Positions 27,990-61,932 of a stretch of DNA of 64,000 nt are shown here, piece after piece (position 1 is the stretch's first letter; every line of letters starts with the position of its first letter). Location of the stretch: the sequence record OR513085.1; one strand, given 5' to 3'. Under the pieces are notes generated by a model. It was not told the origin of the DNA. It saw only the letters and a list, made by a program, of their open reading frames with translations, and did no database searches. A program made the position numbers and the translations under genes.

Positions 27990-28018
27990 ACAAATGCCTA
28001 GCTTTGTTAGGCATTTGT
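27990..28018 (+). terminator. terminator-like hairpin
   Basis: ACAAATGCCTAG..TTAGGCATTTGT. Confidence 0.65.
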
Positions 28019-28065
28019 GTATTATAACATTACAATACAACATAATAAATACACACGACAAAATC

Positions 28066-28938: not shown

Positions 28939-28958
28939 CATACAATACATTATATTTA

Positions 28959-28989
28959 GCTCGGATAGTTATGCTATCCGAGCATTTTT
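28959..28989 (+). terminator. hairpin: terminator or IS605-type left-end hairpin
   Basis: GCTCGGATAG-ttatg-CTATCCGAGC immediately upstream of tnpB. Confidence 0.55.
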
Positions 28990-29005
28990 AAAAATTAACA
29001 ACTAA

Positions 29006-30172: not shown

Positions 30173-30259
30173 AATGTTAAGACTTAAACAAGAGTCATGA
30201 TTATATGGACACGGATTTATACCTCCATTTTTATACTTTATAAAAAATAAAACAATTAA

Positions 30260-45900: not shown

Positions 45901-46602
45901 GCTGATTTTGGTGACTGGGAAGGTGACGGTTATTCTCTTGACGTAGTACTTACTGGAGTTTCTGAGGAATACAACGTTTACACTACTGAACTTATCAATG
46001 AAGCTGCTGAGGACTTAACTGACTTACCTTCTGGAACTGCAGAGAACATTGACCATAAAGTTATCGAGGATGGCAATGCTACTGACATTCCTAGCAACCT
46101 CGACAAACCACTAGAAAACAAATTAGCTGAGGACTTCCTTGCTAGAGCTGATAAAGGCGTAACATTTGAACAATGGATTGTTGACCAAGCTTCTGCTAAC
46201 GAATTAGTTACTCCTCAGTTAGTAATGACGGTTAAAACAATTATTTCTGACATGGAAGTTAAGCAAATGATTAACGAATCTGCAGTACTAACCGCAGCAT
46301 TTATTAACGAATCTGCAGAAGCTACTGAACAATCAGCTCACTTAAAGCTTATTGGTGACCACATCGGACAATCTCACAAATACATGTTTGAACACTTGAA
46401 CGAATCTGCAAAAGGAGTTCTAGTTGCTCAAGCTGAATTGTATAACTTGTCCAGCCAAAATATCCACGACTTCCTTGATACAAGAAACTGGGCACAAATC
46501 GCTAATACTACAATTAACGAATCAGTAGCTCAAATTTCTGCAAATATTCAACAAAATGACTGGAAATCTGCACTTAAAGCATCTTTCAGAGCAGGTAGAT
46601 AG
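42979..46602 (+). CDS. prohead protease gp21 fused to long scaffold/core polyprotein
   Basis: N-terminal gp21 motifs NGRWY, FGEIEHP, VSHRALGSV, WDVTSNPSF; acidic remainder with recurrent (I/L/A)NE(S/A/G). Confidence 0.9.
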   Translation: MNNTQNLGFLVENHVSHNVFQRIDESVALPDGVLMLMRGTFIPMDVPGENGRWYTYADYAPQVEMLLPKIARKECFGEIEHPQRVHVPYDLASHRVEEVYYDKASNSWIGTIAILDTDKGRAVYDIAKTGAPIYVSHRALGSVDQKTGKGILLKLLTWDVTSNPSFKAAEFSRAELINESAYVYLPLEDEMLNECYAELGLTSEDFINESTVTLTQSELLAMLNEASNNANAIATERYAKLLANAINVNANFVNEHIAIQPSQVIDVVKKIKERPWMTAQEMLDPEFKFNDEYMHPLDLVAAMQALASEGMLYDEDAPGFDENEPQIASVIAVPQLEEVIANWQMEQDALAADVIAAEEAKAAKFSNESVDFVNNFASEYAFVGPYEATKQAVAALTGKAIGDLSESVEARISDIMVNAKPGNAEEIINALVDAELYVSEALEAASNPNKNKEMLQILVNFTKYVELKLHVFHHNTKSYAQHKAFDTAYKSFQKLTDSIIEQAMGYSGERYDTIDLSVSMPIVYADDSGADVIESLYSLSKVIKLISEDLIAGGLSTLSDDVSGIGAQLSYLMTLNESQLDEFANEGVSSWLKDKWSRLKRWANSNIDATVTIDGVDYIIDDIQEDDKVICRDSDGKAKEFTFDEVYKYLNENNILQPQTMANTHINEGVDGAKANVLAILSGAKFVSSVDNATDYDYSIDDDGLTAASDEVALDILAVLKNNAVTASVDGAKVAITFGIVPAVVTDQINESLEDFCNKMLSYANESGNAGNIINAAMAIQNANGVININESYVTYCEQIVEYANESGVASDIANAGSLLQNALEAKFANEAEETAAIVSDATIAGDVAVDGGNERYAVGCVFSVDSQNFTVAEFDGTNVVTTTGETFTVAELKKDDDAPIPGTDDALEPGAPVEGDNTVDMTVTPVGTIGSINESYSKTNKPKIGDKVTFIMDNPDGPGFGKVKNGEKVTATVADFGDWEGDGYSLDVVLTGVSEEYNVYTTELINEAAEDLTDLPSGTAENIDHKVIEDGNATDIPSNLDKPLENKLAEDFLARADKGVTFEQWIVDQASANELVTPQLVMTVKTIISDMEVKQMINESAVLTAAFINESAEATEQSAHLKLIGDHIGQSHKYMFEHLNESAKGVLVAQAELYNLSSQNIHDFLDTRNWAQIANTTINESVAQISANIQQNDWKSALKASFRAGR

Positions 46603-46817: not shown

Positions 46818-48539
46818 ATGCAAACATTATTTCCAAACGCCAACCAAGTTGGCAACATGGTAGACAGATGGTCTGAATTTATTAACGAAGCAGCTCCTAA
46901 AGGTGGTAGTACTCTATCTGATGGTAAGAGAGCAATGATCGCTCAGGTTGCAGAATTCCACGCTCATGGCAAGGATATCGCAACTGGAGGATTCTTGAAC
47001 GAATCTATCATCGGTACAAATATTATGTCAAACGGTGCTAACATGAACGGAATGGGTTCTATTACTCTTCCTACTAACGTTAAAGCTGGATTTACCCAAT
47101 TCAACCAACAAACTCCTGGTTCTGGTGATGTTCCTGTGACTGTGCTTTCAATGGCAATGTCAGTAGCTGCGACTACTATCGGTTTTGATTTGTTACCAAC
47201 TATTCCAATTTATCAGCCTGCAGTAATGCTACAGTACGTAGATTACCTTTACGGTGGTGGTAAACTTGATTCGGCAGATAACCCTCCTTTGATCGTTATG
47301 GCTAGAATTGAGGAACTTAGAGGACACCTTGATCTTAGACAAGGTTCTAAAGTTGCTATCCACTCTGTTGCAGGTGATGCTACTTCTGGATGGACATTTG
47401 AGTTCGTTGGATTTACAAGATTAGAAGGATATGCAACTTTAAAGGTTGACACTTTCGCTAACAAAGTAACTCCTGCATTAGGTTCTCTTGCTTTAGTTGA
47501 ATTTACTATTGACGGTGGTGCTCCTGTAACAGTTGCTCCTGCTGGAAATCCTAAATTGGAATTAGCTAGAGCGGTTGAAAACCACTTCTCAATGTTCACA
47601 GCTTACGGAAACCTTGATGGTGAAGGAGTTGATAGAGCTGAAGCTGAAAAAGGTACAAGATCAGTTATCGAAATGAGAACTTACTCTAAAGTAGTAAGAA
47701 CTAAAGAACATGCTGTAGAAGGTATCGTTTCAAGACAACAAGCTAGAGATATCAAAGCTATGGGTCTTGATGCATTCCCTCAATTGAAAGTTGCAATGCA
47801 GAATGACATCTCTCAGTCATTAAACAAGGAAATCCTTATGAGAATGAGACAGATGGGTGTTTCTACACACTTAATGTTACAGAAATCTCAAGGAGTTAAC
47901 TTGAACACTTACATTGACTTACCAGCTAACACTTCTAAGCCAATTGTACAGTTCAAAACTCAGCCTCTTATCGACAAGAACGGAGTTAACCAAACTGCTA
48001 ACTTCTTACCAGCTCCTAACTCTGAAACTAACTCAGCTGCTGAAAACCTTTGGACTAGACAAAGAAGAGTAACTTCTACCATCATCACTGGTGCTGCTCT
48101 AGTAGGACAAGCTTCTTTCCACGGTTCTGCTGACGCTGTAGTTGTTAACTCTCAGTTAATGGCAGCTATTAAGGAATCTGTTGGTTACCAGCCAGCTACT
48201 ATTGAGAACAAAATCTCTCAGTCTACAAAGGCTCTTTATTATGCAGGTACTATTTCTGACGTTGCAGTTTACTGTGACCCTAACATGAAATGGAACGATA
48301 CTACTGCTATCTTGGCTAGAACAGGTAAAACTGATGACGGTCTTGATATTAACCAATTAGCAGAAGGGTTAGTTTTTCTTCCGTATGTCTTGAGTTCGGA
48401 AGTTGAAATTATCACTGAAGGAACTATGGGTCCTAAAGCGTTAATCGAAACTGTTTATGCTATCGGAGAAATTGGTATCAGACCAGAACTTGCTTACTTA
48501 ACTATCGTATTCGATAACGGATTTGGTAGATGGGCATAA
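46818..48539 (+). CDS. major capsid protein gp23
   Basis: 573 aa after the protease; gp23-like VLSMAMSVAATTIGFDLLPTIP..YVDYLY, AEAE, RQQARDIKA; N-terminal INEA/LNES sites; strongly biased codons. Confidence 0.92.
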   Translation: MQTLFPNANQVGNMVDRWSEFINEAAPKGGSTLSDGKRAMIAQVAEFHAHGKDIATGGFLNESIIGTNIMSNGANMNGMGSITLPTNVKAGFTQFNQQTPGSGDVPVTVLSMAMSVAATTIGFDLLPTIPIYQPAVMLQYVDYLYGGGKLDSADNPPLIVMARIEELRGHLDLRQGSKVAIHSVAGDATSGWTFEFVGFTRLEGYATLKVDTFANKVTPALGSLALVEFTIDGGAPVTVAPAGNPKLELARAVENHFSMFTAYGNLDGEGVDRAEAEKGTRSVIEMRTYSKVVRTKEHAVEGIVSRQQARDIKAMGLDAFPQLKVAMQNDISQSLNKEILMRMRQMGVSTHLMLQKSQGVNLNTYIDLPANTSKPIVQFKTQPLIDKNGVNQTANFLPAPNSETNSAAENLWTRQRRVTSTIITGAALVGQASFHGSADAVVVNSQLMAAIKESVGYQPATIENKISQSTKALYYAGTISDVAVYCDPNMKWNDTTAILARTGKTDDGLDINQLAEGLVFLPYVLSSEVEIITEGTMGPKALIETVYAIGEIGIRPELAYLTIVFDNGFGRWA

Positions 48540-48575
48540 TCAATAAAGCTTCGGCTAAATTGATTTAACAATATG

Positions 48576-48608
48576 AACCTCGGTTACTTTTTGTAGCCGA
48601 GGTTTTTT
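48576..48608 (+). terminator. intrinsic terminator
   Basis: AACCTCGGTTAC..GTAGCCGAGGTTTTTT. Confidence 0.8.
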
Positions 48609-48620
48609 GTGTTAAAATAG

Positions 48621-48663
48621 TTGCAAAAATATTTTCATATGTTAAATAAAATGATTAAATTTA
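48621..48663 (+). promoter_or_regulatory. promoter, TTGC class
   Basis: TTGC...TTTTCATATGTT-N12-TAAATTTA. Confidence 0.75.
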
Positions 48664-48667
48664 TATA

Positions 48668-50098
48668 ATGATTAAACGTAAAAGACAAACATATAATGAC
48701 GTTATAGCCGATTGCAAAAAAGCTCATGGTAATTATTATGACTATGTAGATACGTCTGCTACTTGGTATAAGAAAACTGACAAACTTAGAATTATATGTC
48801 CTGTTCATGGCGAATTTGAACAATCTGGCAAAAACCATAGTAAAGGCCAAGGCTGCACAAAATGCAAAAAGAACATACAATCGTATGACCAAATTATAAC
48901 TAAAGTCCTGGAAATTCATGCGTCCAGAGGCTATATTTACGAAGACACTTCGGCAGAATTTACAGTTTCAACATCGTCATTCCTTAAAGCTAATTGTCCT
49001 AAGCATGGCGAATTTGAAGTCAGGGCGCATGCACATAGTGTAGGTGTTTTAGGATGTCAAGGATGCTATACGGATGATTTAGTTGATCGTCAAAGATATA
49101 GTAAAGATGAAATGCATAGCATTTGTAAAGTTATTTTAGCTAAACGTAAATGTACAATTTTAGACATAACTTTTTATGTCGATAAAGCAAATTCAAATTT
49201 TATAATAAATTGCCCTAAGCATGGCAATTTTGAAAAGAATGCTTATCAAATTTTATTAAAACAAGGTTGCCCTAATTGCGTAGGCTATAATTCCTCAAAG
49301 GCTGAAACATTTTTGAGAGATCATTTAGTTGGCCAAGGTATTGCAGATGCTGTAGGTCGTAAGCGTTTTAGACATCATGAAACTAATAAACTTTACGAAA
49401 TAGACGTGCAATCGCCAAGCTTAAAAATTGGAATAGAATTTAACGGAATACATTGGCATAGAGGCGAAGTATTCAAGCATAAACATATGCTAAAAACTAC
49501 AAGCCTAGACTATATGAACTGGCAGTTAATTCATATTTTTGAGGATGAATATCATGCAAAATTTAATGCAGTAATGTCAATGATTAATCATAAGCACGGA
49601 GTTACTAAACAAAAAATTCATGCCAGGAAAACTAAGACTGCTTTAATTGACGAAGACACTTACGTACAATTCTGCAACGAAAACTGCATACAAATTTTTG
49701 ACAAGCTGGCATTTAATTACGTAGGGCTATATTTAGCAGAAACATTAGTTGGCGTAATTGCGTATAACGTAGATACTAAAGCTAACGTAGACATCATAAA
49801 TATTGCGATGTTAAACAATCATAATATAATTGGCGGAGTCGGCAAATTAGTAGCTTATGTAGAACGTTCGGAACGTCCTGCATCAATAACCGCTACGCTA
49901 AACAGGCAATTCTCAACTAAGCATAACGTTTTTGCAAAACTAGGCTTTGATTTTGTTGAATATACAGAACAGAATTTTATGTACAGTATACATAGCAGTC
50001 CTAGGATTTTGCCAGAACATACGTCTATTGAACATCAAATAGATTCTAATAAAGTCTGGGATGTCGGTAACATTATTATGAAAAAAGTGTTCAAATAA
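48668..50098 (+). CDS. free-standing Hef-like/DUF559-type homing endonuclease
   Basis: three CPxHGxF..GCxxC Zn ribbons; EIDV..KIGIEFNGIHWH..LIHIFEDE nuclease core. Confidence 0.8.
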   Translation: MIKRKRQTYNDVIADCKKAHGNYYDYVDTSATWYKKTDKLRIICPVHGEFEQSGKNHSKGQGCTKCKKNIQSYDQIITKVLEIHASRGYIYEDTSAEFTVSTSSFLKANCPKHGEFEVRAHAHSVGVLGCQGCYTDDLVDRQRYSKDEMHSICKVILAKRKCTILDITFYVDKANSNFIINCPKHGNFEKNAYQILLKQGCPNCVGYNSSKAETFLRDHLVGQGIADAVGRKRFRHHETNKLYEIDVQSPSLKIGIEFNGIHWHRGEVFKHKHMLKTTSLDYMNWQLIHIFEDEYHAKFNAVMSMINHKHGVTKQKIHARKTKTALIDEDTYVQFCNENCIQIFDKLAFNYVGLYLAETLVGVIAYNVDTKANVDIINIAMLNNHNIIGGVGKLVAYVERSERPASITATLNRQFSTKHNVFAKLGFDFVEYTEQNFMYSIHSSPRILPEHTSIEHQIDSNKVWDVGNIIMKKVFK

Positions 50099-50130
50099 TT
50101 TTCATATGTCGTAAAAAATGATTAAATTTA
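50099..50130 (+). promoter_or_regulatory. early/middle-type promoter
   Basis: TTTTCATATGTC-N12-TAAATTTA. Confidence 0.8.
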
Positions 50131-50157
50131 CATATAATTAAAAATAACGATAACAGC

Positions 50158-50340
50158 ATGAAAAAGACATTCCTACTTAGAGACTGGCAAAATTTATACT
50201 ATTGCTTTGAGCATTATCAATTTTGGCACGTAGATAAAGGTCAAGCTAAAATGTTTTATTCAATGGAAGACGTTGAAGCTACAGTAATTGAAAATAACCT
50301 ACAGGACGTAGAAATCGTAACTTTACTAAGCAAAGCATAA
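50158..50340 (+). CDS. hypothetical protein
   Basis: 60-aa ORF after promoter. Confidence 0.6.
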   Translation: MKKTFLLRDWQNLYYCFEHYQFWHVDKGQAKMFYSMEDVEATVIENNLQDVEIVTLLSKA

Positions 50341-50343
50341 AAT

Positions 50344-50784
50344 ATGGCTATGAACAAACAAAACATACAGCGTGCAATAAACCATATTAGAACATTACGG
50401 CCTGAAAATTTTGATATGCAAGATTACCGTGCAGCCCAATTTACTGACAAAGCTCCTGAATGCAAAACTATAGGATGCATAGTAGGCCATTGCACTATAC
50501 TTGATGCCAAAAACATCAATGAAAAATTTATAGATATGCGTAACGATTCCATTATGTTCAACGAATGGTCAGTCGAATTCTTTGGCATTGGTATTTTGCA
50601 AAGAAGCTGGGACTATATGTTTTCATGTAATTGGGCTAAGTCACAAAAAACTAACACTATAGAACATGCAATTTATCGCATGGAACGTATAATTGACGAT
50701 TATAAGCCAGGCAATATTGACGATGAATATTCATACGAAACTGGCGCTACTAGGCTTGAACCTGGATATACTGACAACGACTAA
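50344..50784 (+). CDS. hypothetical protein
   Basis: 146 aa; CKTIGCIVGH motif. Confidence 0.7.
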   Translation: MAMNKQNIQRAINHIRTLRPENFDMQDYRAAQFTDKAPECKTIGCIVGHCTILDAKNINEKFIDMRNDSIMFNEWSVEFFGIGILQRSWDYMFSCNWAKSQKTNTIEHAIYRMERIIDDYKPGNIDDEYSYETGATRLEPGYTDND

Positions 50785-50840
50785 CTTTTATGCACTACAG
50801 TGCAATCTATAAACATAATAACAAATAAATTTTTAAAACA

Positions 50841-51758
50841 ATGACAAACATCAACGCGACCGAAAGACTCATTGCTATCTGGCAAAATGATTATGCTAGG
50901 CACACTAAAAACCACAAAACAGTCAACGAAGACGGCATTCTTAAAAAGTATTGGAAAAATCCAATTACACATTATTATGCTAATATTGGCACTGATGTAC
51001 TTAGACAAATGCTAGAAGATTCAGAAGCTTATGACTATCCTGGCTTAGAATTTGCAGAACCTCAGCAAAATCCTAACAAAACTGCAATGCCTGAATACAT
51101 AGGCAGTTATGCACTTTCAGAGGACCAGGTCATTCAATTTTATCATGACAAAGACCTCAAAAATGACATGCAGATGTACTATGCAGAAGAGGAATATGAT
51201 TATCATCGACTACTTTTCGGAAGTCGTAGCAATCCTACATTAGGCAAAGTATTCTCAAAAGTTTATTGTAACATCATTACAGATACGCCAATTTCAGACT
51301 TCCTTAGACTTCATATTTACCGAGTACTAAACAACCTGGATAATGAAGGCACTAAATTCTACTTGCTACTTTCTGCAGCTGCAGCAAAACAACTAAAGCA
51401 TGAGTCAGACTTTACTGAACAAATTTCAATGACTACAATTAGCCAAATTAAACACAACACATCAAAATTTGGCACGTTCCGACCAAAATGGAAAAAGACT
51501 TCTAATTATGGCAGAGCATTCAGGAACATTTTAGAAAATCATGCATGCATAGAATTGTACGAATGCCATGATTCAGGAGCTTCTATTAACCAGGAGCATA
51601 ATTATCCTATGGCTGCTATACTTACTAGCTACAAAATGCATGAACGTTTCGATAATTGTAGCATACATTCACCAATGCATCCTAACGATCATACGCCAAC
51701 ATCATTAAAGTCAGAACTAATTGAAAATATTTTGGACAAAGCTTTAAAAACTTGCTAA
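50841..51758 (+). CDS. hypothetical protein
   Basis: 305-aa ORF. Confidence 0.7.
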   Translation: MTNINATERLIAIWQNDYARHTKNHKTVNEDGILKKYWKNPITHYYANIGTDVLRQMLEDSEAYDYPGLEFAEPQQNPNKTAMPEYIGSYALSEDQVIQFYHDKDLKNDMQMYYAEEEYDYHRLLFGSRSNPTLGKVFSKVYCNIITDTPISDFLRLHIYRVLNNLDNEGTKFYLLLSAAAAKQLKHESDFTEQISMTTISQIKHNTSKFGTFRPKWKKTSNYGRAFRNILENHACIELYECHDSGASINQEHNYPMAAILTSYKMHERFDNCSIHSPMHPNDHTPTSLKSELIENILDKALKTC

Positions 51759-51794
51759 AATGTTTTCACGTTTCAAATAATTTTCTTATATTTG
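51752..51794 (+). promoter_or_regulatory. promoter, TTGC class
   Basis: TTGC...TTTTCACGTTTC-N12-TATATTTG. Confidence 0.75.
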
Positions 51795-51823
51795 TATTAT
51801 TAAAATAACACACATACAAAACA

Positions 51824-52558
51824 ATGCAAAACAAACCAATCTTAACAAGAGATCAAAAGCTAGCAATCCTAGGAGATAACCCACATAATTGGGACGTTGA
51901 CAACTTGGAAATTGTACAGGACATTGCAATAACAAACGAATTTGTAATGCAGGCTAACGAGGCAAACTACAAAACGTTGCTAGGCTTAGGCTGGACCAAC
52001 CACTACACAATTCATTTGTTGGATAAAATCAACCTCAACTATTACATAGACACTCCAGAAGTTTCAGGAAAACCTTCAAGCGACTTCAAAATTTCAATGA
52101 GGAATCACTTTGACCAGGATGTTGCCGAAGACTTAGGAACTGTACCGAACTCAGAAGTAGGAACTGCATTTACAAACTTATGGACTAGGCAAAATGCTTT
52201 AGTTACACATTTGTTCAAAGCATCAAGCATTATGAATACTATGTACGGCAATTTTGGTAAAACTATAATCGTAAATTCACAACTTGCTGCGGCTATTAAA
52301 AGTACAGAATTGTTCAAGCCTACACCTGTAGAGGAATTGGCTGAAACGTCATCAACTTCAATGCCATATGTTGCAGGTACGATTACTACCGAAGATGGCA
52401 AAATGTCACTAAAAGTCGTAGTTAATCCTCAGCAGCCATGGGCAGATACTACTGCAGTATTGTATGACGGTGACTTTGACTTCCAAACAATTGAACTTGA
52501 GGAAGGCTTAACTTCAATTTCATTCGCATTCAATAACGGATTAGGCCCATGGGCGTAG
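51824..52558 (+). CDS. truncated paralog of MCP (C-terminal half)
   Basis: shares NLNxYIDxP, PNSE..NLWTRQ, VNSQLxAAIK, YxAGTI, WxDTTAxL and terminal NGxGxWA with 46818-48539. Confidence 0.9.
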   Translation: MQNKPILTRDQKLAILGDNPHNWDVDNLEIVQDIAITNEFVMQANEANYKTLLGLGWTNHYTIHLLDKINLNYYIDTPEVSGKPSSDFKISMRNHFDQDVAEDLGTVPNSEVGTAFTNLWTRQNALVTHLFKASSIMNTMYGNFGKTIIVNSQLAAAIKSTELFKPTPVEELAETSSTSMPYVAGTITTEDGKMSLKVVVNPQQPWADTTAVLYDGDFDFQTIELEEGLTSISFAFNNGLGPWA

Positions 52559-52782
52559 AATTAACCTCAGAAGAAAAGAAGGCGTATATCCAGTCGAAAG
52601 GCTGGACTACCCTTTGGCATGACAACTATTGGGTACATTCAGGAATCATGGCCGGTGCCAACCTAGATTATTGTGGAATTGATTTAAACTCTGCATACAA
52701 ATGCCAATTAAAGCATGAAGCGCCAAAAGAAGTACAGAATAATAAACTTCCAGGCTTCAAAGACCACAACAATTTAACATAG
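52549..52782 (+). CDS. hypothetical protein
   Basis: 77-aa ORF overlapping previous stop. Confidence 0.6.
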   Translation: MGVELTSEEKKAYIQSKGWTTLWHDNYWVHSGIMAGANLDYCGIDLNSAYKCQLKHEAPKEVQNNKLPGFKDHNNLT

Positions 52783-52826
52783 CGGCTAAGCTGCAATACT
52801 TTTATAACAACAAACAATACAACAAC

Positions 52827-53240
52827 ATGAAACAAAGACTAACAAAACTATTTACATTCTCATTCGTACTAATTGCACTACTTTCACTACAATCATGCTG
52901 GGAATTTTCAAGACAGCAAGCTATCAATGACGCTGAGGCTAAAGGTATTGCAACCTTAAAAGAATCCGAGTCTTCCAAGAAAGCTATGGTTGAACAAGCT
53001 AAAGCTGAAAACCAGGCATCTACACTTAAGGCTGAAGCTATGGTTAAAATTGCAACTGCCCAGGCTAACGCTGAAATTGAACGAGCTAAAGGTGTTGCCA
53101 GAGCTAATGAAATTATCGGCCAATCGCTTAAAGGTAACAACGAATACTTAAAGTACTTGCAAATTGACGCAATTAAGGAATCCAAAGGTGCCAAAGTTTA
53201 CATTCCTACTGAGGCAGGACTTCCAATTATTGAAAGATAG
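52827..53240 (+). CDS. lipoprotein with SPFH/prohibitin-like C-terminal coiled coil
   Basis: lipobox LQSC; AEIERAKGVARANEIIGQSL..YL..IPTEAGLPI. Confidence 0.75.
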   Translation: MKQRLTKLFTFSFVLIALLSLQSCWEFSRQQAINDAEAKGIATLKESESSKKAMVEQAKAENQASTLKAEAMVKIATAQANAEIERAKGVARANEIIGQSLKGNNEYLKYLQIDAIKESKGAKVYIPTEAGLPIIER

Positions 53241-53261
53241 ACTAATTCGTATAAATATAGC

Positions 53262-53293
53262 AATCCCAAGTGCCTGGTGTACTTGGGATTTTT
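53262..53293 (+). terminator. intrinsic terminator
   Basis: AATCCCAAGT..ACTTGGGATTTTT. Confidence 0.75.
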
Positions 53294-53353
53294 GTGCTTT
53301 GTATGGACCTTGCTAGGCACTAATATATACTTTATCAAACAAATTATTAAACT

Positions 53354-53584
53354 ATGACAACTCAACACGACATAACGATTCAAAACGTTACGGGTTCTGA
53401 CAGCGGAGTTTGCGTTGTCACCCTCAAAAACTCAATTGATGAACAGACTAAACTAAGTATTGTAGCTAAACCAAGCTTTGTTTCAGTAGTTCCGGTAATG
53501 GGTTCAAACAAAACTTTAAAACTAATATGGCATGCGGAAACAATTGCCGAACAATACAACGTCAAGCTCAAAATTGAGCGCTAA
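53354..53584 (+). CDS. hypothetical protein
   Basis: 76-aa beta-rich ORF. Confidence 0.55.
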   Translation: MTTQHDITIQNVTGSDSGVCVVTLKNSIDEQTKLSIVAKPSFVSVVPVMGSNKTLKLIWHAETIAEQYNVKLKIER

Positions 53585-53624
53585 TTGACGTTCTGCTTCT
53601 TGCAACTTTGTCATGTGTATTTAG

Positions 53625-53656
53625 AAAAGCCCTAGTCAAATTTGACTAGGGCTTTT
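53625..53656 (+). terminator. intrinsic terminator
   Basis: AAAAGCCCTAGTCAAA/TTTGACTAGGGCTTTT. Confidence 0.8.
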
Positions 53657-53683
53657 CTTGTGTGTAAAAATTGTTGAAAATAC

Positions 53684-53726
53684 TTGCCAAAACATTTTCA
53701 TATGTCGAATAATTGTTATATATTTG
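53684..53726 (+). promoter_or_regulatory. promoter, TTGC class
   Basis: TTGC...TTTTCATATGTC-N12-TATATTTG. Confidence 0.8.
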
Positions 53727-53754
53727 TAATAACAAAATGAAACATATTAATATT

Positions 53755-54015
53755 ATGACAACTACAAATTATACTGAAATTGAATTGGCTATTTTAAACT
53801 CAGAAAATTATAAGCATAACTCACAAAGTATAGATTATCTTGGTGATTTTTACAAAACTAACAATGACCAAAGCGTATTTTCAGTTATATCAAAAACTGA
53901 AAGTGAAATTAAAATGCATATGTTTGATGTTGAAGATGATGGAAGTCATTCAAATGCATACACAAAAATTGAATCTTTAAAAACTTTAAATTTTAACGAT
54001 TTTTTAACACTTTAA
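53755..54015 (+). CDS. hypothetical protein
   Basis: ATG 53755 (or 53737) downstream of promoter. Confidence 0.6.
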   Translation: MTTTNYTEIELAILNSENYKHNSQSIDYLGDFYKTNNDQSVFSVISKTESEIKMHMFDVEDDGSHSNAYTKIESLKTLNFNDFLTL

Positions 54016-54048
54016 ATTTTTTACTTTCAATTATTTTTCTTAAATTTA
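53993..54048 (+). promoter_or_regulatory. promoter, TTAACA class
   Basis: TTAACG-N5-TTAACA, TTTTTTACTTTC-N12-TAAATTTA. Confidence 0.75.
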
Positions 54049-54086
54049 TACTATAATTAAAAACAAACATTTAAAAAATCAAACTT

Positions 54087-54389
54087 ATGAAAAAGCAAAT
54101 TAGAATTACTGCTACAATGAGAGAAACTCTTACAACAAAACAAATTTTAAGCTTAGAAGCTAAACAAGCAAAAATTGCTAAAGCCAACAAGGAGGCTAAA
54201 GCAAAACAAAAAATCAAAGAAGCTAAAGCTGCAGAGAAAGCTGCTAAGGCTGAAGCTAAACGTTCAAAATTTGAACACGTAAAAATGCTTAACTATCCAG
54301 GAATGGAGTATATGCCAAATCTTGATAACTTGCTAAAAGCTACTGATACTGTCGAGTTCTTTGCAAAGAAAAAATCCGACTTCATTTGA
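54087..54389 (+). CDS. basic K/A-rich hypothetical protein
   Basis: 100 aa; possibly frameshift-fused to the next ORF. Confidence 0.65.
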   Translation: MKKQIRITATMRETLTTKQILSLEAKQAKIAKANKEAKAKQKIKEAKAAEKAAKAEAKRSKFEHVKMLNYPGMEYMPNLDNLLKATDTVEFFAKKKSDFI

Positions 54390-54675
54390 AATTTTCAGAA
54401 TCTGCAATAACAAGAAAACTCATGCTTTAGTTATTACGCCATCCAGGTTAGAACGTAACCACGTACTTTGCCAAAACTTAAATGGCAATTCAAGACAACA
54501 AGTAGTTTTAGAATTTGGCGCACAGGATGAAATCCTTGCACTACTTGCAGGACTGCCAATCTACAATGACTACGATATGGACTATAACCACACTCAAAAG
54601 GACAAATATTACGTAGCAGGTCAATGTATTCAGAACGACATGACTATCTACAGAGCAATATTTGCTTCCATCTAA
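54361..54675 (+). CDS. hypothetical ORF lacking an early ATG, +1 frame relative to upstream gene
   Basis: open frame overlapping 54087 ORF across an A6 run. Confidence 0.5.
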   Translation: MQRKNPTSFEIFRICNNKKTHALVITPSRLERNHVLCQNLNGNSRQQVVLEFGAQDEILALLAGLPIYNDYDMDYNHTQKDKYYVAGQCIQNDMTIYRAIFASI

Positions 54676-54698
54676 TACCAACGTTCTAACCTTCCTAC

Positions 54699-54723
54699 AA
54701 AGCCTAGTTTCGGCTAGGCTTTT
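54699..54723 (+). terminator. intrinsic terminator with TTCG loop
   Basis: AAAGCCTAGT-TTCG-GCTAGGCTTTT. Confidence 0.8.
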
Positions 54724-54750
54724 CTAAAAATCAAACAAAATCAAAATATC

Positions 54751-55119
54751 ATGTTCACAATAAAATTACTTCAAGAAGCTTCAAAACTACAAAATGCTAA
54801 CGATCCTAACGAAAGATTAGTAGCAGTAGTATCACAACTAACCCCGCAACAATATGTTGAGTTGCTTAGCGAAATTGATTTTGACGGCAATTATTCATTT
54901 GATGATGCTGGGCAGCTTTGGTTCTATGATAAAATTGGTTATTATGACGAACCTAAGGTTAAAGTCGAAGACGCTAAGATTCCTACAAGCATGGTAATGT
55001 TTGTAGAACTTACGGATGAGTTACTTACTACATTCGTAGAAATTTTGTATAGTTTAATACAAACTTACAATTCAGGCTTCAATCACCCTTCAAGAAGACA
55101 TTTAAAAATCGCAATTTAA
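54751..55119 (+). CDS. hypothetical protein
   Basis: 122-aa ORF. Confidence 0.65.
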   Translation: MFTIKLLQEASKLQNANDPNERLVAVVSQLTPQQYVELLSEIDFDGNYSFDDAGQLWFYDKIGYYDEPKVKVEDAKIPTSMVMFVELTDELLTTFVEILYSLIQTYNSGFNHPSRRHLKIAI

Positions 55120-55126
55120 AAATAGC

Positions 55127-55408
55127 ATGGCAGAACTTACATTTTCAGAAAAATACAAAGCTTTACTGGCAGAAGCGCAAAACAAACTAAACGTTTGGTG
55201 TAATGATAATATAAAGTCTAAAGGCTTAAAGTCTATAAAGCTTAAGCATGAGTTTATCGACAATGGTGATGTGGATTGGTATAATTATGACGAACTTACG
55301 TCAGATGGCGAATTACTATCAACTGAAGAAAGCTACACGTTATCAGTTGCTTCAGCAACTAACGTATTTGGATTCCTTGAACTTATTGACGAACTTACAC
55401 AAAACTAA
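55127..55408 (+). CDS. hypothetical protein
   Basis: 93-aa ORF. Confidence 0.6.
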   Translation: MAELTFSEKYKALLAEAQNKLNVWCNDNIKSKGLKSIKLKHEFIDNGDVDWYNYDELTSDGELLSTEESYTLSVASATNVFGFLELIDELTQN

Positions 55409-55416
55409 AACATATC

Positions 55417-56328
55417 ATGGCAAAAACATTTGAACTTATAAAAGACGGTAGTATAAAACATGCAGGCCGTACACTTTACAAAATAAAAGCTTTAGTAGAC
55501 ATTCCAAATCATGGCGTAAATGCCGGAGATATTGGTGGATGGGTAGAATCTGAAAATAACCTACAAAGCGATGAAGCATGGATTGGCGATGCAGCCATGG
55601 TTTATGGTGACGCTGTAGTTTCAGAAAAGGCTTTAGTTACTGAATTTGCACAAGTTTCAGGATTTGCTGAAATTAAAGGCTTTGCAAAAGTACAAGGTAA
55701 TGCCAAAATTTCAGACAAAGCCAGAATTTGGGGAAGCTGTACTGTTGAAGACAACGTTACGATAGGAGGCTTTACATTCATTGCAGACTTTGCAATAGTA
55801 CGAGGATTTGCTAAAATTGCAGGAGAAATTCAAATTATTGAAAACGCTAGAATTTGGGGTCATGTAAAAATTTATGCTAACGCTATAATTAGAGGTCATG
55901 CACAAATTTATGGTGATGCTGCCATTTATGGAGGCACTATTTCAGGTAATACGGTAGTTTGTGACTATGCAAAAATAGGTTCTCATGTTATGCTAAGCTA
56001 TGGAATTTTTAAAGGTAGGGCTGTAGTTACTACACCTAGTGACTACGCAGCAATTGCTAACATAGGCTCAAGGAATGGAACTACTATAGCATATAAAACT
56101 AACGTACTTGCTCAAAGACCATCACAAATTGAAATTATTTGCGGATGTTTCACAGGTGACTTACAACAATTCTACAATATTGTACGTAGACAATATGGCG
56201 GGCATAACGTAGGTATTGCGGGTAGACGTTACTACAAAGAATACATGGCAGCTATACAACTTATTGAAGCCAAATTCTCTGTGAAAGTAAAGCGTAAAGG
56301 TAGATTTTTGGCATGGTTAAGATCATGA
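55417..56328 (+). CDS. left-handed beta-helix (hexapeptide repeat) protein
   Basis: LYKIKAL..AGDIGGWVESENNL then repeats such as AMVYGD/AQVSGF/AKVQGN; C-terminal CGCFTG. Confidence 0.85.
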   Translation: MAKTFELIKDGSIKHAGRTLYKIKALVDIPNHGVNAGDIGGWVESENNLQSDEAWIGDAAMVYGDAVVSEKALVTEFAQVSGFAEIKGFAKVQGNAKISDKARIWGSCTVEDNVTIGGFTFIADFAIVRGFAKIAGEIQIIENARIWGHVKIYANAIIRGHAQIYGDAAIYGGTISGNTVVCDYAKIGSHVMLSYGIFKGRAVVTTPSDYAAIANIGSRNGTTIAYKTNVLAQRPSQIEIICGCFTGDLQQFYNIVRRQYGGHNVGIAGRRYYKEYMAAIQLIEAKFSVKVKRKGRFLAWLRS

Positions 56329-56415
56329 ACCTACTAATTGGAATTTTTGGTTTTAGAATTGAAATAACCAACTGCGAATACGAGAATTTTTCTAACGAAC
56401 AAAGACAAATCGACA

Positions 56416-57126
56416 ATGAATTATAACGACATATCAATACCAGTAGCTAATTTAAAGGCCGGTTGCTATGAAAATCACATAGGCAACAATATTTCGCCGA
56501 ACGCTACGATAGCTGTGCTACTTTACGTTCTTTACGATAACGAAGTTATAAACAAGCAATCATTACTTGACAGAACAAAAGTGTTACGTAACACACCTAA
56601 AGGGCTAGGCGAAATTAAAAACGATTCCGAATTGTACCATTACTACGAAACACATAAATGCCCAATTACTGGCGAGTGGTATAGTGACACTAGGAATCAT
56701 CACATTCTGAATGATGCTATTGACGAAAAAGTTGAATGGAATGTACTAAATAGCCTTAGGATTCCTTACGCAAAAATGGTTGAATTCCTTATGTTAATCT
56801 ACGGAGTTTCAAAAAGTAAGGCTAAGGATTTGTTCAATAAACTATACATTCTGGATGCTTTGGTTGATTTTAGATCACTAGGAAGCCATACAGTTGAATG
56901 GTACAAAAGTCTTGGCTTTATTGACATCGAACCTAAAGATTTTGAAATGCCTGACTACAAGCATAATTTCAAGTTTGCTTTTACTGGACCAGTTGATACT
57001 GATGATTTTGAAGCTAAATTTAACGATGAGAAACGTAAAGCCTACGCTAAGCTAGAACAACAAAAACGTTCGACATTAGGATTGCTAATGCAAACTCATG
57101 CAATTAACTTAAAAGCTACTTACTAA
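56416..57126 (+). CDS. hypothetical protein
   Basis: 236-aa ORF. Confidence 0.7.
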   Translation: MNYNDISIPVANLKAGCYENHIGNNISPNATIAVLLYVLYDNEVINKQSLLDRTKVLRNTPKGLGEIKNDSELYHYYETHKCPITGEWYSDTRNHHILNDAIDEKVEWNVLNSLRIPYAKMVEFLMLIYGVSKSKAKDLFNKLYILDALVDFRSLGSHTVEWYKSLGFIDIEPKDFEMPDYKHNFKFAFTGPVDTDDFEAKFNDEKRKAYAKLEQQKRSTLGLLMQTHAINLKATY

Positions 57127-57128
57127 AC

Positions 57129-57422
57129 ATGGAACTAGACATTTTACTTAGCAACATACTAGCCAACGCCAGCAAAACAGAACGTAACGCTTACGAAATG
57201 CTTAACGAAACTAACCAAACATTTAGCAACATAGGAACTTTCAAGCTGAAGAAATTTGACAAGCCATTCACAATAAAAGTTACTAAAGAACGTTGGTCAG
57301 GTAAGTTATGCTTTAGGAAGCAGGACAAAAACAAGTACAAAGGATTCACAGTTTCTACTGTACTTACAGACGATGAGCTATCAGAAATCTACGGAAAATA
57401 CTCAGACAACGATATAGCATAA
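57129..57422 (+). CDS. hypothetical protein
   Basis: 97-aa ORF. Confidence 0.6.
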   Translation: MELDILLSNILANASKTERNAYEMLNETNQTFSNIGTFKLKKFDKPFTIKVTKERWSGKLCFRKQDKNKYKGFTVSTVLTDDELSEIYGKYSDNDIA

Positions 57423-57455
57423 AAAATGCCAAGCATACTGTATGCTTGGCATTTT
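57422..57455. terminator. bidirectional terminator between convergent genes
   Basis: AAAAATGCCAAGCAT-ACTGT-ATGCTTGGCATTTT. Confidence 0.8.
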
Positions 57456-57466
57456 GTTTTCTCTTT

Positions 57467-57694
57467 TTATTTCTTTGCAGATTCAAGTTTTTCAAGCTGG
57501 TCAGCTTTTATTTTCTTGTCTCCTTTTAACTTCTCCATTATAGCTTTGTAAGTGATTGTTCCACCTACTGCAACAGTCGTCATTAGTGCAGTTGCTAAGT
57601 ATTCAATTTGTTCTGGGCTTAATCCTGAAATTATGTCTGAAATTGATTCGTTAGCAAAAGATTGCTTAGGTCCTTGTTTTCTAAATGTACTCAT
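57467..57694 (-). CDS. small putative virion/internal protein with ANES site
   Basis: MSTF...SFANES then hydrophobic segment; GTAAATAA late-like leader; convergent terminator. Confidence 0.6.
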   Translation of the reverse strand: MSTFRKQGPKQSFANESISDIISGLSPEQIEYLATALMTTVAVGGTITYKAIMEKLKGDKKIKADQLEKLESAKK

Positions 57695-57773
57695 TGTTGT
57701 AAGATGTTTATGTTGAATTATTTACACAACTTGCTAAAAGTTGTGAATGCTTCGCATATTAATGTAAAAGTTT

Positions 57774-57816
57774 TTGCAAAAATGTTTTACGATGTCAAAT
57801 AAAAGTTATATATTTG
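57774..57816 (+). promoter_or_regulatory. promoter, TTGC class
   Basis: TTGC...TTTTACGATGTC-N12-TATATTTG. Confidence 0.75.
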
Positions 57817-57837
57817 TATTATACAAAAACAAACAAT

Positions 57838-58110
57838 ATGAACCAAATAAGCAAAACTGCTTTGGCTATAACTTTCGCAGTACTACTTTTCTTTGGGCCG
57901 TTAGGTTACAAGATTTACAAAGGCAATTTTCAGCCTAAAGAAAACTTTACAATTGAGTTAACTTATATTGATGGCTACGTTGAAACTAAAACGTACAACC
58001 TAAACAAAGACTCTGAGTTCTACGTACAAACATCCAAAGGTAGCTATAGCCTGCAAACGCAATACGTTGTAGTAGCTCCTGGTGTTATACGTTACAAACT
58101 AATTAAGTAG
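57838..58110 (+). CDS. membrane-anchored hypothetical protein
   Basis: N-terminal hydrophobic helix from ATG 57838. Confidence 0.6.
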   Translation: MNQISKTALAITFAVLLFFGPLGYKIYKGNFQPKENFTIELTYIDGYVETKTYNLNKDSEFYVQTSKGSYSLQTQYVVVAPGVIRYKLIK

Positions 58111-58129
58111 GAAAAGTTTTTGAAAATAG

Positions 58130-58172
58130 TTGCAAAAACATTTTCATAAGTCAAAAACTTTTCTTATATTTG
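58130..58172 (+). promoter_or_regulatory. promoter, TTGC class
   Basis: TTGC...TTTTCATAAGTC-N12-TATATTTG. Confidence 0.8.
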
Positions 58173-58225
58173 TATTATACAAAATCAATAATTAACATTT
58201 ATTAATCAAACAAATTCAAAACAAA

Positions 58226-59509
58226 ATGACAACAAACGTACAAAACTTAGGAACTATTTTCGCAGATAAATTCAATGAAGTAATGGCTAACGAAGCTAAT
58301 GTAACAAAAGCTTACCAAGTCATAGCTAAATTTTGTATAAGCCAAGCTAACCAGGCAGATGAAGATGACTCAGAAACTATAGCTTTCTGGAATGAAAAAG
58401 AAACTTATTGTATGGACAAAGCTAAATCAGGAGTTGCTAAAGTTGCAACGACAATCGAACGCTTCCAAAAGAACACTTCAAACTTCAAAACTGAATTTAA
58501 GTTTTCAAGTAAGGAGGAAAGAACAATTTACCAAAGATTCGTAGAAAACAAGGAAAACACTACAAACAAGTTAATGTACTACACAGTAACTGATGAAAAC
58601 TTCAATTACAGAACTGAGTCTGGCATTTACTTCCACAACATGGTTAATGCAATTGTTGAGAGATTTAACGAAATTTCAAACTACGAATTTGCTATAGTTG
58701 ACAAGGAGTTCTTAGTTAACAACGAATTTGCTATTGATACTGAACTTGGTAGAAGATATGCATTCTATGTAGATACTGATGACTTCCATGCATCTACAAA
58801 AGAACAAGTAGCATCAGTTTATTCAAAAGTACATCCAGGATGCAGAGTATTCGTTTCTTACGAAGCATTAGCCGAACATATCTCAACTTACATCAGATAC
58901 AAAGCTATCTACATTCTAAGCGACCAGGCATTCAATGCTTTACGTTACTTAGTAGATTCAATTGAGGTAGTTAAATGCCCAAACCTTGATCTTTCAGAAT
59001 TTGGTGATGATAACTTGGTAAGCCATGACTTTCAGGCATACGCAGAATTCCTAAGCTTCAGAAAATTCAATACTGTACATTACACAAATTCAGAAGTTGT
59101 AGAAGTAGAAGTTGAACAAAAACAAGAGTTCTTCTCTGACTTTATCAGATTCAAATCTACAGGAAAGGCAGAGAAAAAGTCAGTAACAAAGGACATTACT
59201 TACGACCTAGTAACAATTTCTAAACCGGCATCAAAGGTACCAGTTTACCGATTTGCTAAAAGAATGAAGCAAAATCCAGGTACTAGACAAATCCTGATTC
59301 AAAACATCCTATTGACATTGAACGAAAACTTACAATTGGAAAACATTGAAGTTATGCCAGAAGATTTTACGTTAAGCAACAACAAAGATTACGTTATGCA
59401 TAGCCAACTTAACTCCATCATTACAATTGCTAACAGAGATGCAGACAAATTCCATGCAGGAACGTTAGAAGCATTAACAAACATTTTGCAAATACAAATT
59501 AGAAAGTAG
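58226..59509 (+). CDS. hypothetical protein
   Basis: 427-aa ORF after promoter. Confidence 0.75.
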   Translation: MTTNVQNLGTIFADKFNEVMANEANVTKAYQVIAKFCISQANQADEDDSETIAFWNEKETYCMDKAKSGVAKVATTIERFQKNTSNFKTEFKFSSKEERTIYQRFVENKENTTNKLMYYTVTDENFNYRTESGIYFHNMVNAIVERFNEISNYEFAIVDKEFLVNNEFAIDTELGRRYAFYVDTDDFHASTKEQVASVYSKVHPGCRVFVSYEALAEHISTYIRYKAIYILSDQAFNALRYLVDSIEVVKCPNLDLSEFGDDNLVSHDFQAYAEFLSFRKFNTVHYTNSEVVEVEVEQKQEFFSDFIRFKSTGKAEKKSVTKDITYDLVTISKPASKVPVYRFAKRMKQNPGTRQILIQNILLTLNENLQLENIEVMPEDFTLSNNKDYVMHSQLNSIITIANRDADKFHAGTLEALTNILQIQIRK

Positions 59510-59590
59510 GATAATTTTTCATAGACATATAATTTTTGCCTGGGTAGTCTTTAAGATTGCCCAGGATTTTTAAAACAAACTTAACAAACA

Positions 59591-60061
59591 ATGGAAACTA
59601 TAACAGTCATAACAAGCCCAGTTCACAGAAGTATTTATGAAGTCAACATAGGCGTAAATAGCTACGACATTACTTATGTACAACAAAGCGGAACGTCAAT
59701 ACATAGAAACAAAGCTACAAATGATTTGTTGGAACTAAATACTAACGATGAAGCTAAGCTAGAATTAGTTTGTGCGTACTTTAATGCCCTACGTAACTGG
59801 CAATTAGCATACATTAACGAAGACTATCTTACGTTTAACATTGGCAACTTATTAATTCCTGATACACTTAAGGAAAAGTTTATTGGCGAAGTACGTAAGC
59901 ATACGCTAACTTCAATGTTTGGTACATTACAACTTATGGATTCTATGAACATCAAAATTGAAGTTCCTCAATCAGAAGTTGTAGGCAGACCTTTGCTAAA
60001 ATATGCTAAAGCTATCAACCACTACCACAACTACTGCAAACAACAACTTAACAATGGATAA
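59591..60061 (+). CDS. hypothetical protein
   Basis: 156-aa ORF. Confidence 0.65.
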   Translation: METITVITSPVHRSIYEVNIGVNSYDITYVQQSGTSIHRNKATNDLLELNTNDEAKLELVCAYFNALRNWQLAYINEDYLTFNIGNLLIPDTLKEKFIGEVRKHTLTSMFGTLQLMDSMNIKIEVPQSEVVGRPLLKYAKAINHYHNYCKQQLNNG

Positions 60062-60659
60062 ACAAAAACATACACCAAAGCTAATAGCTATTTTTGCTAT
60101 AACTACTAACAACGTTATTGGTGACGTTAAGGATGGTCAGCATATCATGCCATGGCCTAGAATTAGCCAGGACATGAAAAGATTCAAGGCGCTAACTGAT
60201 GGTCATGTTGTAGTAATGGGACGTAACACTTGGGATAGCCTAGGCTCCTATGCGCCATTACCAAATCGAACAAACATAATTGTTTCGCGTACGTTACGTT
60301 ACACTGACGTTATGCATCACCCAAATACTTACGTTTTTGATAGTATTGATGATGCTATAGCTTATGCTAAGGAAATTTGTGAGACTAATTTGCCTGAACT
60401 TGGTAGAAATGTTTACATCATGGGCGGCGGCCAAATATACAGGCAGACTAAGGGCATTGTAGATCAGATTGAAGTTACTAATATTATAGCATGTCCTAAT
60501 GTAGGTCCTGACACTGTAAAATTCAATTCATTCGAGGCATACAAAGGATTTAAGCGTACAGAAACATCACCAGTATACAATATGACTGACAAAAGTACTG
60601 GTAAAAAGTTGGATTTTTATTTCTATACGGAGGTACGCGATACCCAAAAATTGCCTTAA
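60054..60659 (+). CDS. folA: dihydrofolate reductase
   Basis: IFAITTNNVIG..MPWP..DMKRFKALT..VVMGRNTWDS..PLPNRTNIIVSR..IMGGGQIY. Confidence 0.95.
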   Translation: MDKQKHTPKLIAIFAITTNNVIGDVKDGQHIMPWPRISQDMKRFKALTDGHVVVMGRNTWDSLGSYAPLPNRTNIIVSRTLRYTDVMHHPNTYVFDSIDDAIAYAKEICETNLPELGRNVYIMGGGQIYRQTKGIVDQIEVTNIIACPNVGPDTVKFNSFEAYKGFKRTETSPVYNMTDKSTGKKLDFYFYTEVRDTQKLP

Positions 60660-60717
60660 ATTTTTGTACTTTAATATAACTTAACAAAATAATTTAAATA
60701 CACAGATAAACACTACA

Positions 60718-61380
60718 ATGGCAAAAATCTTAAAAGAAACTACAACAATTGACTTAGGCATAAAATATGCTGGCAAAGTATCAAAATCAATCACAGATAC
60801 TTTCGCTGACCGACTTAACAACATTACAATCAATGCAATCGTAACACAGTTTGCACATTCGCCAGAAGGTGCAAAAATTATGTTCATGGGTGTTGGCAAA
60901 AATTCATACCTTTCGCATAAACTTGCAGCTACTTGTCAGTCATTGAATATCAATGCAAACTACTTTGATTCTGTACATGCTATGCATGGTGACTTAGGCG
61001 CTTTACGTTCAGGTGATATTGTAATTGCGTTTTCAAAATCTGGCAAAACTGCCGAGTTGCTTCACACTTTAGCTTACCTTAAAAAGCACAAAAAACATTT
61101 TGGTGTAACTACTGTAGGTGTTTTTGCATCAGATGATGATTATAATTCTGAGGCGGTTACTTCAATGGAAATAACAAAAAACACAGACTACCAAATTTTG
61201 CTTAAATCATGCCAAGAATTGGACGACAACAAAACGGTACCGACAACTTCAGCATTGGTTATGCAGGCAGTAGGCGACGTTATAGCATTACAAATTGCAT
61301 CTAATAACGGCCTTACTACAGAACAATTTGGATTAACACACCCAGGCGGCTTAATTGGTGCAACACATAACAAAGACTAA
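60718..61380 (+). CDS. KdsD/GutQ-like SIS sugar-phosphate isomerase (arabinose-5-phosphate isomerase family), no CBS domains
   Basis: GVGKNSYLSHKLAAT, AMHGDLG, SKSGKTAEL, PTTS, HPGG. Confidence 0.88.
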   Translation: MAKILKETTTIDLGIKYAGKVSKSITDTFADRLNNITINAIVTQFAHSPEGAKIMFMGVGKNSYLSHKLAATCQSLNINANYFDSVHAMHGDLGALRSGDIVIAFSKSGKTAELLHTLAYLKKHKKHFGVTTVGVFASDDDYNSEAVTSMEITKNTDYQILLKSCQELDDNKTVPTTSALVMQAVGDVIALQIASNNGLTTEQFGLTHPGGLIGATHNKD

Positions 61381-61626
61381 TGTGGCCTATAAAAGAAAAC
61401 CTTAATTGCAAAAGTTAGGCATCATTTTGCACAAACCGATCATTATGATGCCGAACTTGCTAAGTTATGCCTAGCACATATTAAACCACTTTGGGATAAA
61501 GAGCTTTGGCAAGAATGTAAAGATGAAGTCTACAAATTTTATGAAGGCTTAGACATCTCGATAGAAAAGGACATGATCCTTGCAAACCTAAATAAACGAA
61601 TAAGATTAAAAACTACACATGACTAA
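61380..61626 (+). pseudogene. frameshifted gene missed by the ORF track
   Basis: TAATG-coupled ATG at 61380 stops after 12 codons; +1 frame open 61393-61626 and overlaps the next ATG. Confidence 0.65.
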
Positions 61627-61867
61627 ACAATACACCGTAGCGTATATGTCATTCTTTGACAATGACTTAAGACTTGCAGTAGTCGAAGCTACATCAGAAC
61701 TTGAAGCTGCAAAGAAATTTTTGTATGACATAACTGATGACAAATACAAACAAGGAGAACTTGATGAACAGGCTAGCGAAAACTATCCAAAAGACATGGA
61801 AGCTTTGAAAGAATATCATTTTAATGCTGACGCAGTTATTAACGTTATCGAAATTCCGACTAAATAG
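61619..61867 (+). CDS. hypothetical protein
   Basis: 82-aa ORF. Confidence 0.65.
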   Translation: MTKQYTVAYMSFFDNDLRLAVVEATSELEAAKKFLYDITDDKYKQGELDEQASENYPKDMEALKEYHFNADAVINVIEIPTK

Positions 61868-61932
61868 TCTAACAAATGCCGGTATTACTGCCGGCATTTG
61901 TGTATTTTAGCATTAAATTTAAAAATCTACAC

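Follow-up and report, generated by a model that had tools for sequence, protein, structure and literature searches.

Phages of the T4 type commonly carry a paralog of the major capsid protein (MCP) at their vertices, and the known MCP paralogs are vertex proteins of this kind, of full length. T4 gp24 is near full-length, is encoded by a late gene of the head module, and forms the pentons. MA9V2_215, the gene of Chryseobacterium phage MA9V-2 that is described here, resembles the gp24 gene in that it lies downstream of the MCP gene and encodes a paralog of a gp23-type MCP with a predicted HK97-fold A domain. Unlike gp24, its product corresponds to the C-terminal 47% of the MCP minus 40 residues (244 versus 573 aa), and the gene stands behind a terminator, has its own sigma-A-type promoter and has lost most of the residues that are conserved in the family. 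When compared with the gp23-type MCPs themselves (PF07068, phrog_28442), such as those of Tenacibaculum phage pT24 and Sphingomonas phage PAU, the protein is similar to their C-terminal halves. It differs from them in its half length, its place on a separate long branch, the lack of a Pfam match, and its occurrence as a second copy in the phages MA9V-1 and MA9V-2 only.

P4 Sid and SaPI CpmB are small, non-shell satellite proteins that act on the MCP of another genome during assembly. The action proposed below for the half-length protein is of the same kind. Sid and CpmB, however, are scaffold-like, encoded by satellites and not derived from an MCP, whereas the half-length protein is a capsid fragment encoded by the phage itself, and the searches run revealed no link in sequence or fold between it and satellite capsid-redirecting proteins. 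Some phage proteins block defence sensors by competing with the structural protein that triggers them. Like the half-length protein, they have early or accessory genes, and the half-length protein might conceivably compete with a structural protein too; we know of none among them that is a truncated homolog of its own trigger. Among the defences that sense capsid proteins are Lit, PifA and CapRel. Within a limited library of literature, no precedent was found for an MCP copy that is trimmed, maintained by selection and non-structural.

A trimmed derivative of the MA9V-2 major capsid protein

The window analysed is a 64,000-nt stretch of the 218.5-kb genome of MA9V-2 (OR513085.1, record bases 124001–188000), a jumbo phage and T4-distant myovirus whose host is C. 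indologenes MA9; positions below are those of the window unless the record is named. The MCP gene, labelled 'major capsid protein' in OR513085.1, is located after the portal and prohead protease genes (Table 1). Its product matched the Pfam Gp23 model at 5.7e-13 and phrog_28442 at 3e-98, and the profile of this MCP family matched T4 gp23 and gp24 in the PDB, although weakly. The neighbouring prohead protease (42979–46602) has an S77-like N-terminus fused to a very long C-terminal extension (1207 aa in MA9V-2, 1347 aa in MA9V-1); a DUF5856 domain lies within the extension, at residues 464–576, and its PHROG match is labelled 'starvation-inducible regulator'.

MA9V2_215 is annotated as a 'hypothetical protein' and encodes a product of 27.1 kDa with a pI of 4.55. 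The initial annotation had described it as a half-length paralog of the phage's own MCP, starting near MCP residue 300, lacking about 40 residues ahead of a retained C-terminus, and located among small hypothetical genes. All of this was borne out, as were the alignment blocks that it had quoted, each of which was found in the alignments. In a BLASTP comparison, the 244-aa protein aligned with the MCP at 28% identity over 215 columns (residues 34–238 versus 325–527, E 6e-22), and when the protein was searched against the window with tblastn, the MCP gene was the sole second match. Multiple alignments extended this relationship to MCP residues 303–573, through the last residue, with the C-terminal tail kept; within this span the half-length protein has one 40-residue gap, equivalent to MCP 518–557, and an insertion of 6–7 residues. 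It also matched phrog_28442 at profile positions 359–533 of 604 (E 2.4e-14). The Pfam Gp23 model gave no match even at E ≤ 1, and a PDB sequence search gave zero matches. Searches of the protein and its neighbours with Pfam, NCBIfam and PADLOC returned nothing usable and no defence-related family.

The nucleotide identity between the half-length gene and the MCP gene is 0.48 overall and 0.38 at third positions, as for saturated synonymous sites, while the last 34 nt at the 3' ends of the two genes are 79% identical (repeat family D6). Between MCP residues 295 and 573, an alignment of 21 MCPs has 93 positions with a conservation of 90% or more; 28 of these are kept in the half-length protein, 42 are changed and 23 are deleted, so that 42 of the 70 family-conserved positions that are still present have changed. 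The A-domain strands and the short helix that follows them are 40–48% identical to the MCP, depending on the segment. In the long helix, identity to the MCP is as low as 14%, yet the MA9V-1 and MA9V-2 orthologs are 95% identical to each other there. The half-length protein is also more acidic than the corresponding part of the MCP, which has a pI of 5.77. In a distance tree, the two half-length proteins formed a long branch outside all MCPs, and the tree does not place their origin; identity is marginally highest to the MCP of the same phage (30%, versus 22–28% to other MCPs). The most economical account, although not a proven one, is that the gene was duplicated in this lineage and then diverged fast. 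MA9V2_215 is an accessory gene for a trimmed derivative of the phage's own gp23-type, HK97-fold MCP, and its product is related to the gp23 family by descent without being a functional member of it.

Two giant proteins in the databases showed repeated short similarity to the half-length protein: P0006 (2516 aa) matches its residues 54–87 in 8 separate stretches, and P0018 (3477 aa) matches residues 60–132 in 4.

Table 1 Features of the MA9V2_215 locus, in window positions.
Feature	Position	Strand	Basis
Full-length gp23-type MCP, 573 aa, parent paralog	46818..48539	+	Pfam, PHROG, annotation, T4 profile match
Strong terminator-like hairpin after the MCP gene, between the MCP unit and the island	48575..48605	+	
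Variable accessory island, about 13 kb, containing the half-length gene	48606..61875	+	Comparison with relatives L004–L007
60-nt 'class 1' promoter element	51745..51798	+	Repeat family D1/D2; PWM 53 bits
Half-length MCP paralog MA9V2_215	51824..52558	+	BLASTP, PHROG, alignments, model, dN/dS
N-terminal tail, residues 1–24	51824..51895	+	Identical in MA9V-1; pLDDT 50–65
Predicted long helix, residues 25–67, equivalent to the MCP spine-helix region (MCP 317–358)	51896..52024	+	Model, profile alignment
Predicted A-domain-like core, residues 68–244, without an equivalent of MCP 518–557	52025..52555	+	Model, alignments
77-aa gene, start overlapping the stop of the half-length gene by 10 nt	52549..52782	+	
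137-aa gene with N-terminal signal/lipoprotein-like segment, last in cassette	52827..53240	+	
Intrinsic-terminator-like hairpin, 12 pairs and T run, closing the cassette	53262..53290	+	

The AlphaFold model of the 244-aa protein (pLDDT 79, pTM 0.75) was built on an input alignment of the two half-length proteins and 15 MCPs, the MCP sequences favouring an MCP-like fold. It consists of a short N-terminal segment, a 43-residue helix, a mixed alpha/beta core and a C-terminal strand at the end. The best fold matches in the PDB were weak (E about 0.02, none at 0.001) and were mainly HK97-fold capsid proteins. T4 gp24 and gp23 were among them, with probabilities of 0.96–0.99 over about 100 columns, and the gp24 structures 1yue, 5vf3 and 7vrt were among the best. 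In BFVD, the top match was the MCP of Tenacibaculum phage pT24 (E 2.7e-12, TMq 0.69); further MCPs and vertex proteins came next.

In T4 gp23, residues 292–307 are assigned to the spine helix, 381–420 to the A domain, 455 to the P-domain sheet and 486–502 to the A–P linker; the A domains form the capsomer core, and the contacts between capsomers are made by the P domains, the N-terminal parts and the linkers of the insertion domain (PMC9546572). Judged by a profile alignment to T4 gp23, the 244-aa protein corresponds to the putative spine-helix region and A domain of the MCP. The 40 missing residues would be equivalent, approximately and on a weak alignment to T4 gp23, to the C-terminal P-domain strands and the A–P linker. 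A model of the full-length MCP, meant for mapping this deletion, was unusable (pLDDT 48). The N-arm, the E-loop and the insertion domain are absent from the half-length protein. Its best-kept block, residues 150–159, aligns by a tentative mapping to the T4 gp23 segment with the gp24-bypass positions 381 and 387, two sites at which T4 subunits meet within the capsomer core (PMC9546572).

Genomic setting and promoter class

The half-length gene is the first of a three-gene cassette encoding proteins of 244, 77 and 137 aa, because strong terminator-like hairpins are found after the MCP gene and after the 137-aa gene, and none was found in 48606–52781. It starts 3.3 kb past the MCP terminator, and two upstream class 1 promoters (see below) could also reach the three genes. 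In MA9V-1 the counterpart of the 77-aa gene encodes 60 aa and has the same overlap with the half-length gene; profile searches with the 77-aa product gave no family match. The 137-aa protein matched phrog_11227 at 6.9e-28 and phrog_200 'lipoprotein' at 6e-6.

We place the half-length gene in a variable island because relatives differ in what follows their MCP gene and none has a second copy; at this locus no second MCP-like copy was present in L004, L005, L006 or L007. In L004 and L006, which are metagenomic and have MCPs that are 71–75% identical, seven or eight small, unrelated ORFs come after the MCP gene, and a homolog of 53354–53584 comes after these. In the more distant L005 and L007, a homolog of 61876–63693 is found directly after the MCP gene or after a different gene set.

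The island contains further genes of note. Directly after the MCP terminator lies an HNH/homing-type endonuclease gene (48668–50098; phrog_559, 4.7e-51) with its own class 1 promoter, which is present in MA9V-1 and absent from L004 and L006. Genes of envelope and sugar metabolism are found at 55417–56328, 60718–61380 and 61876–63693, annotated as LpxD-like acyltransferase, KpsF/GutQ isomerase and GlmU, and the GlmU-like gene is kept beside or near the MCP gene in distant relatives. Elsewhere in the window, a family-B DNA polymerase is present as two genes (25314–26801, 'DNA polymerase II', and 30260–31537, 'DNA polymerase family B'), with two hypothetical genes and a TnpB-type RNA-guided endonuclease gene (29006–30172) between them; this region (25284–31537) looks like a split polymerase with mobile-element cargo.

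The promoter element upstream of the half-length gene is one of four 54-nt repeat copies in an 8-kb stretch. Its -7 box, TATATTTG, is at 51787–51794, with a TTTTCA word 18 nt upstream of the box. MA9V-1 keeps the last ~50 nt upstream of the half-length gene, and differs in sequence farther upstream. In flavobacteria, the -7 consensus of sigma-A is TAnnTTTG and Shine-Dalgarno sequences are lacking (PMC9723704); the -7 box of the half-length gene fits this consensus. The class to which the element belongs (class 1) is marked by a -7 box of this flavobacterial type and by conserved words upstream of the box. With a count matrix from 13 copies in the window, the genome was scanned piece by piece, and 42 class 1 sites were identified at scores of 17–67 bits, all on the coding strand (shuffle maximum 12.6 bits). 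Forty of the 42 lie 12–157 nt before a gene start, and the other two have no start within 160 nt. Class 1 sites precede the genes for both type II topoisomerase subunits, a DEAD-box helicase, an NAD-dependent ligase and a sigma factor, as well as the endonuclease gene beside the MCP gene and many small hypothetical genes. Genome-wide, none precedes an annotated structural gene (portal, protease, MCP, sheath, neck, terminase or head completion).

The initial annotation had assigned the half-length gene a host-type promoter rather than a late one. As a class assignment only, this agrees with the sigma-A -7 box and with a 42-member class that lacks annotated structural genes. The late promoter with which it was contrasted fared less well. 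The 8-mer named for it is present 40 nt ahead of the MCP gene. Neither this 8-mer (4 found in the window versus 8.8 expected) nor a looser pattern was enriched, so that no late-promoter word is statistically established in the MA9V-2 genome. To judge by its promoter class, the half-length protein is probably produced ahead of the late structural proteins or independently of them.

The class 1 set could also be used to map the pre-late transcription units of MA9V-2. In the window, its -7 boxes are at 1811, 2548, 14104, 14687, 21986, 33764, 38762, 48656, 50123, 51787, 53719, 54041 and 58165. The phage has two sigma-like genes, one for a small 'sigma-70 region 2' protein (33215–33622) with no class 1 promoter, the other for a 387-aa factor (record 62344–63507) with one, an arrangement that would fit a transcription cascade. 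A perfect 18+18 nt palindrome without spacer lies in the intergenic sequence at 53623–53658, before the class 1 promoter at 53677–53730, and could be a protein-binding site or a hairpin.

Selection and distribution

The ortholog in MA9V-1 (OR050627.1), MA9V1_157, is identical in length to MA9V2_215. In this single pair, 73.7 synonymous differences were counted versus 35.3 non-synonymous ones, giving a dN of 0.064, a dS of 0.74 and a dN/dS of 0.087, a value in the range of those for dihydrofolate reductase and other neighbouring genes. The orthologs do not differ at any of the first 33 residues, and 4 synonymous changes fall there (hypergeometric P = 0.009 for the invariance). Neutral decay, the outcome named beforehand as one that would refute the proposed role, was not seen, the ratio being far from 1 in the one ortholog pair. 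The gene is under strong purifying selection, as measured on this pair, and is not a decaying remnant; its dN/dS, equal length and conserved promoter mark it as a maintained gene and not a relic. A protein whose function has changed would be expected to look like this, with the constraints of the MCP family lost and constraint between orthologs kept.

Over 46818–61380, MA9V-2 and MA9V-1 have diverged to very different degrees from gene to gene. The MCP gene has a dS of 0.12 and the island genes have values of 0.6–2.4, the genes at 54751–55408 are identical or nearly so in the two phages, and the 305-aa protein encoded at 50841–51758 is only 55% identical. This unevenness points to mosaic exchange between MA9V-1 and MA9V-2.

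Among the databases searched, the half-length MCP copy was found in MA9V-1 and MA9V-2 only. The searches comprised a word search of 5.8 billion proteins, HMMER on 1.84 billion representatives, a profile search, and searches of phage GenBank (tblastn), IMG/VR, JGI metagenomes and GTDB genomes. No other half-length copies were found in these, the short matches being contig-edge fragments. One short match proved to be a piece of a relative's only MCP gene, read in two frames; that gene has one frame change, which may be real or an assembly error. MA9V-3 is an unrelated 103-kb phage.

Each of the two genomes has the N-terminal half of the MCP in one place, no remnants of it were found between the MCP gene and the half-length gene, and MA9V-2 has no MCP paralog besides the half-length one. 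The 305-aa ORF directly upstream was considered as the N-terminal half of a split gene and was rejected (BLASTP no match, hhalign probability 0.3%).

Possible roles of the half-length protein

We infer that the half-length protein does not serve as a subunit of the shell, since all of the capsomer-linking elements are absent and most family-conserved residues are changed. Our preferred mechanism, to which we give a rough probability of 0.35, is that it acts as a soluble module resembling the capsomer core, which would bind full-length gp23-type subunits, made by the phage itself or by a co-infecting relative, via the retained A-domain core. Because such a module would be unable to extend the lattice, it would modulate capsomer formation or compete with it. 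The long helix and the N-terminal tail, remodelled yet highly conserved, would make a contact of a new kind; the 77-aa protein, whose gene is translationally coupled, is a possible partner in it. The alignment of block 150–159 to a segment at the capsomer-core interface lends tentative support to subunit binding. At such low similarity to the MCP, binding to MCP subunits is not assured.

It is nearly as likely that the fold has been re-used with a new partner, the A-domain core being a mere scaffold from which the helix and the N-terminal tail bind a host protein or the 77-aa protein. The task would then be host takeover or exclusion, together with the lipoprotein-like gene of the cassette. 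The long helix, so different from that of the MCP and so well kept between orthologs, fits this possibility, as do the invariant N-terminal tail, the changes at 42 of the 70 retained family-conserved positions and the shift in net charge evident from the pI. So does the setting of the gene, which lies in a variable island and shares its cassette with a small gene coupled to it in translation and with the gene of a signal-peptide protein. However, the best-kept blocks are the A-domain strands and the short helix, which map tentatively to the capsomer-core interfaces of T4, and no partner can be named, the neighbours being without a family match.

The main idea of the initial annotation was a capsid decoy, made ahead of the MCP, that would occupy capsid-sensing host sensors without triggering them. 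This is unlikely. The protein is MCP-derived, its promoter is of a pre-late type, it is encoded in an accessory island, and capsid-sensing defences such as Lit, PifA and CapRel do exist. Yet it is only 28–30% identical to the MCP that it would imitate, the surface-exposed parts are the most changed, and the whole N-terminal half is absent; neither PADLOC nor any other family search gave a link, the literature searched yielded no precedent, and no sensor is known in the host. Similarly doubtful is the broader proposal that the capsomer-core half of the phage's capsid protein has been turned into an early accessory which either soaks up capsid sensors or caps the capsomers of co-infecting relatives; if true, this would be a capsid-derived decoy or inter-phage assembly weapon without precedent.

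Less probable again is a minor virion protein, that is, a reduced gp24-like subunit at the vertices or at another special position. Vertex paralogs of the MCP are common in T4-type phages, gp24 is among the fold matches, and MA9V-2 has no other paralog that could take this place. A published SDS-PAGE of MA9V-1 virions has bands at 25–35 kDa, without protein identities, and such bands would be compatible with a virion protein of this kind. Against this, the half-length protein is devoid of the N-arm, the E-loop, the insertion domain and the segment that maps to the P domain, which are the ties of a penton to its neighbours; its gene stands 3.3 kb away from the MCP gene with a terminator in between, has a promoter of a non-structural class, and is absent from the four relatives at this locus.

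A functionless by-product of partial duplication, arising for example via the homing-type endonuclease gene that directly follows the MCP gene in both phages and is not in the relatives, would account for the similar 3' ends of the two genes, and is largely refuted by selection (dN/dS 0.087, with synonymous sites saturated relative to the MCP gene), by the intact frame and length in both phages with a conserved promoter, and by the lack of flanking repeats and of N-terminal-half remnants nearby, three genes with their own promoters lying between the half-length gene and the endonuclease gene.

Only two closely related phages carry the half-length gene, which limits the reach of the finding. 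The half-length protein would show that the A domain of the HK97 fold can be exapted for a role outside the shell, and it offers a concrete case in which to ask whether phages put pieces of their own structural proteins to use in tuning assembly, in competing with relatives or in blunting capsid-sensing immunity.
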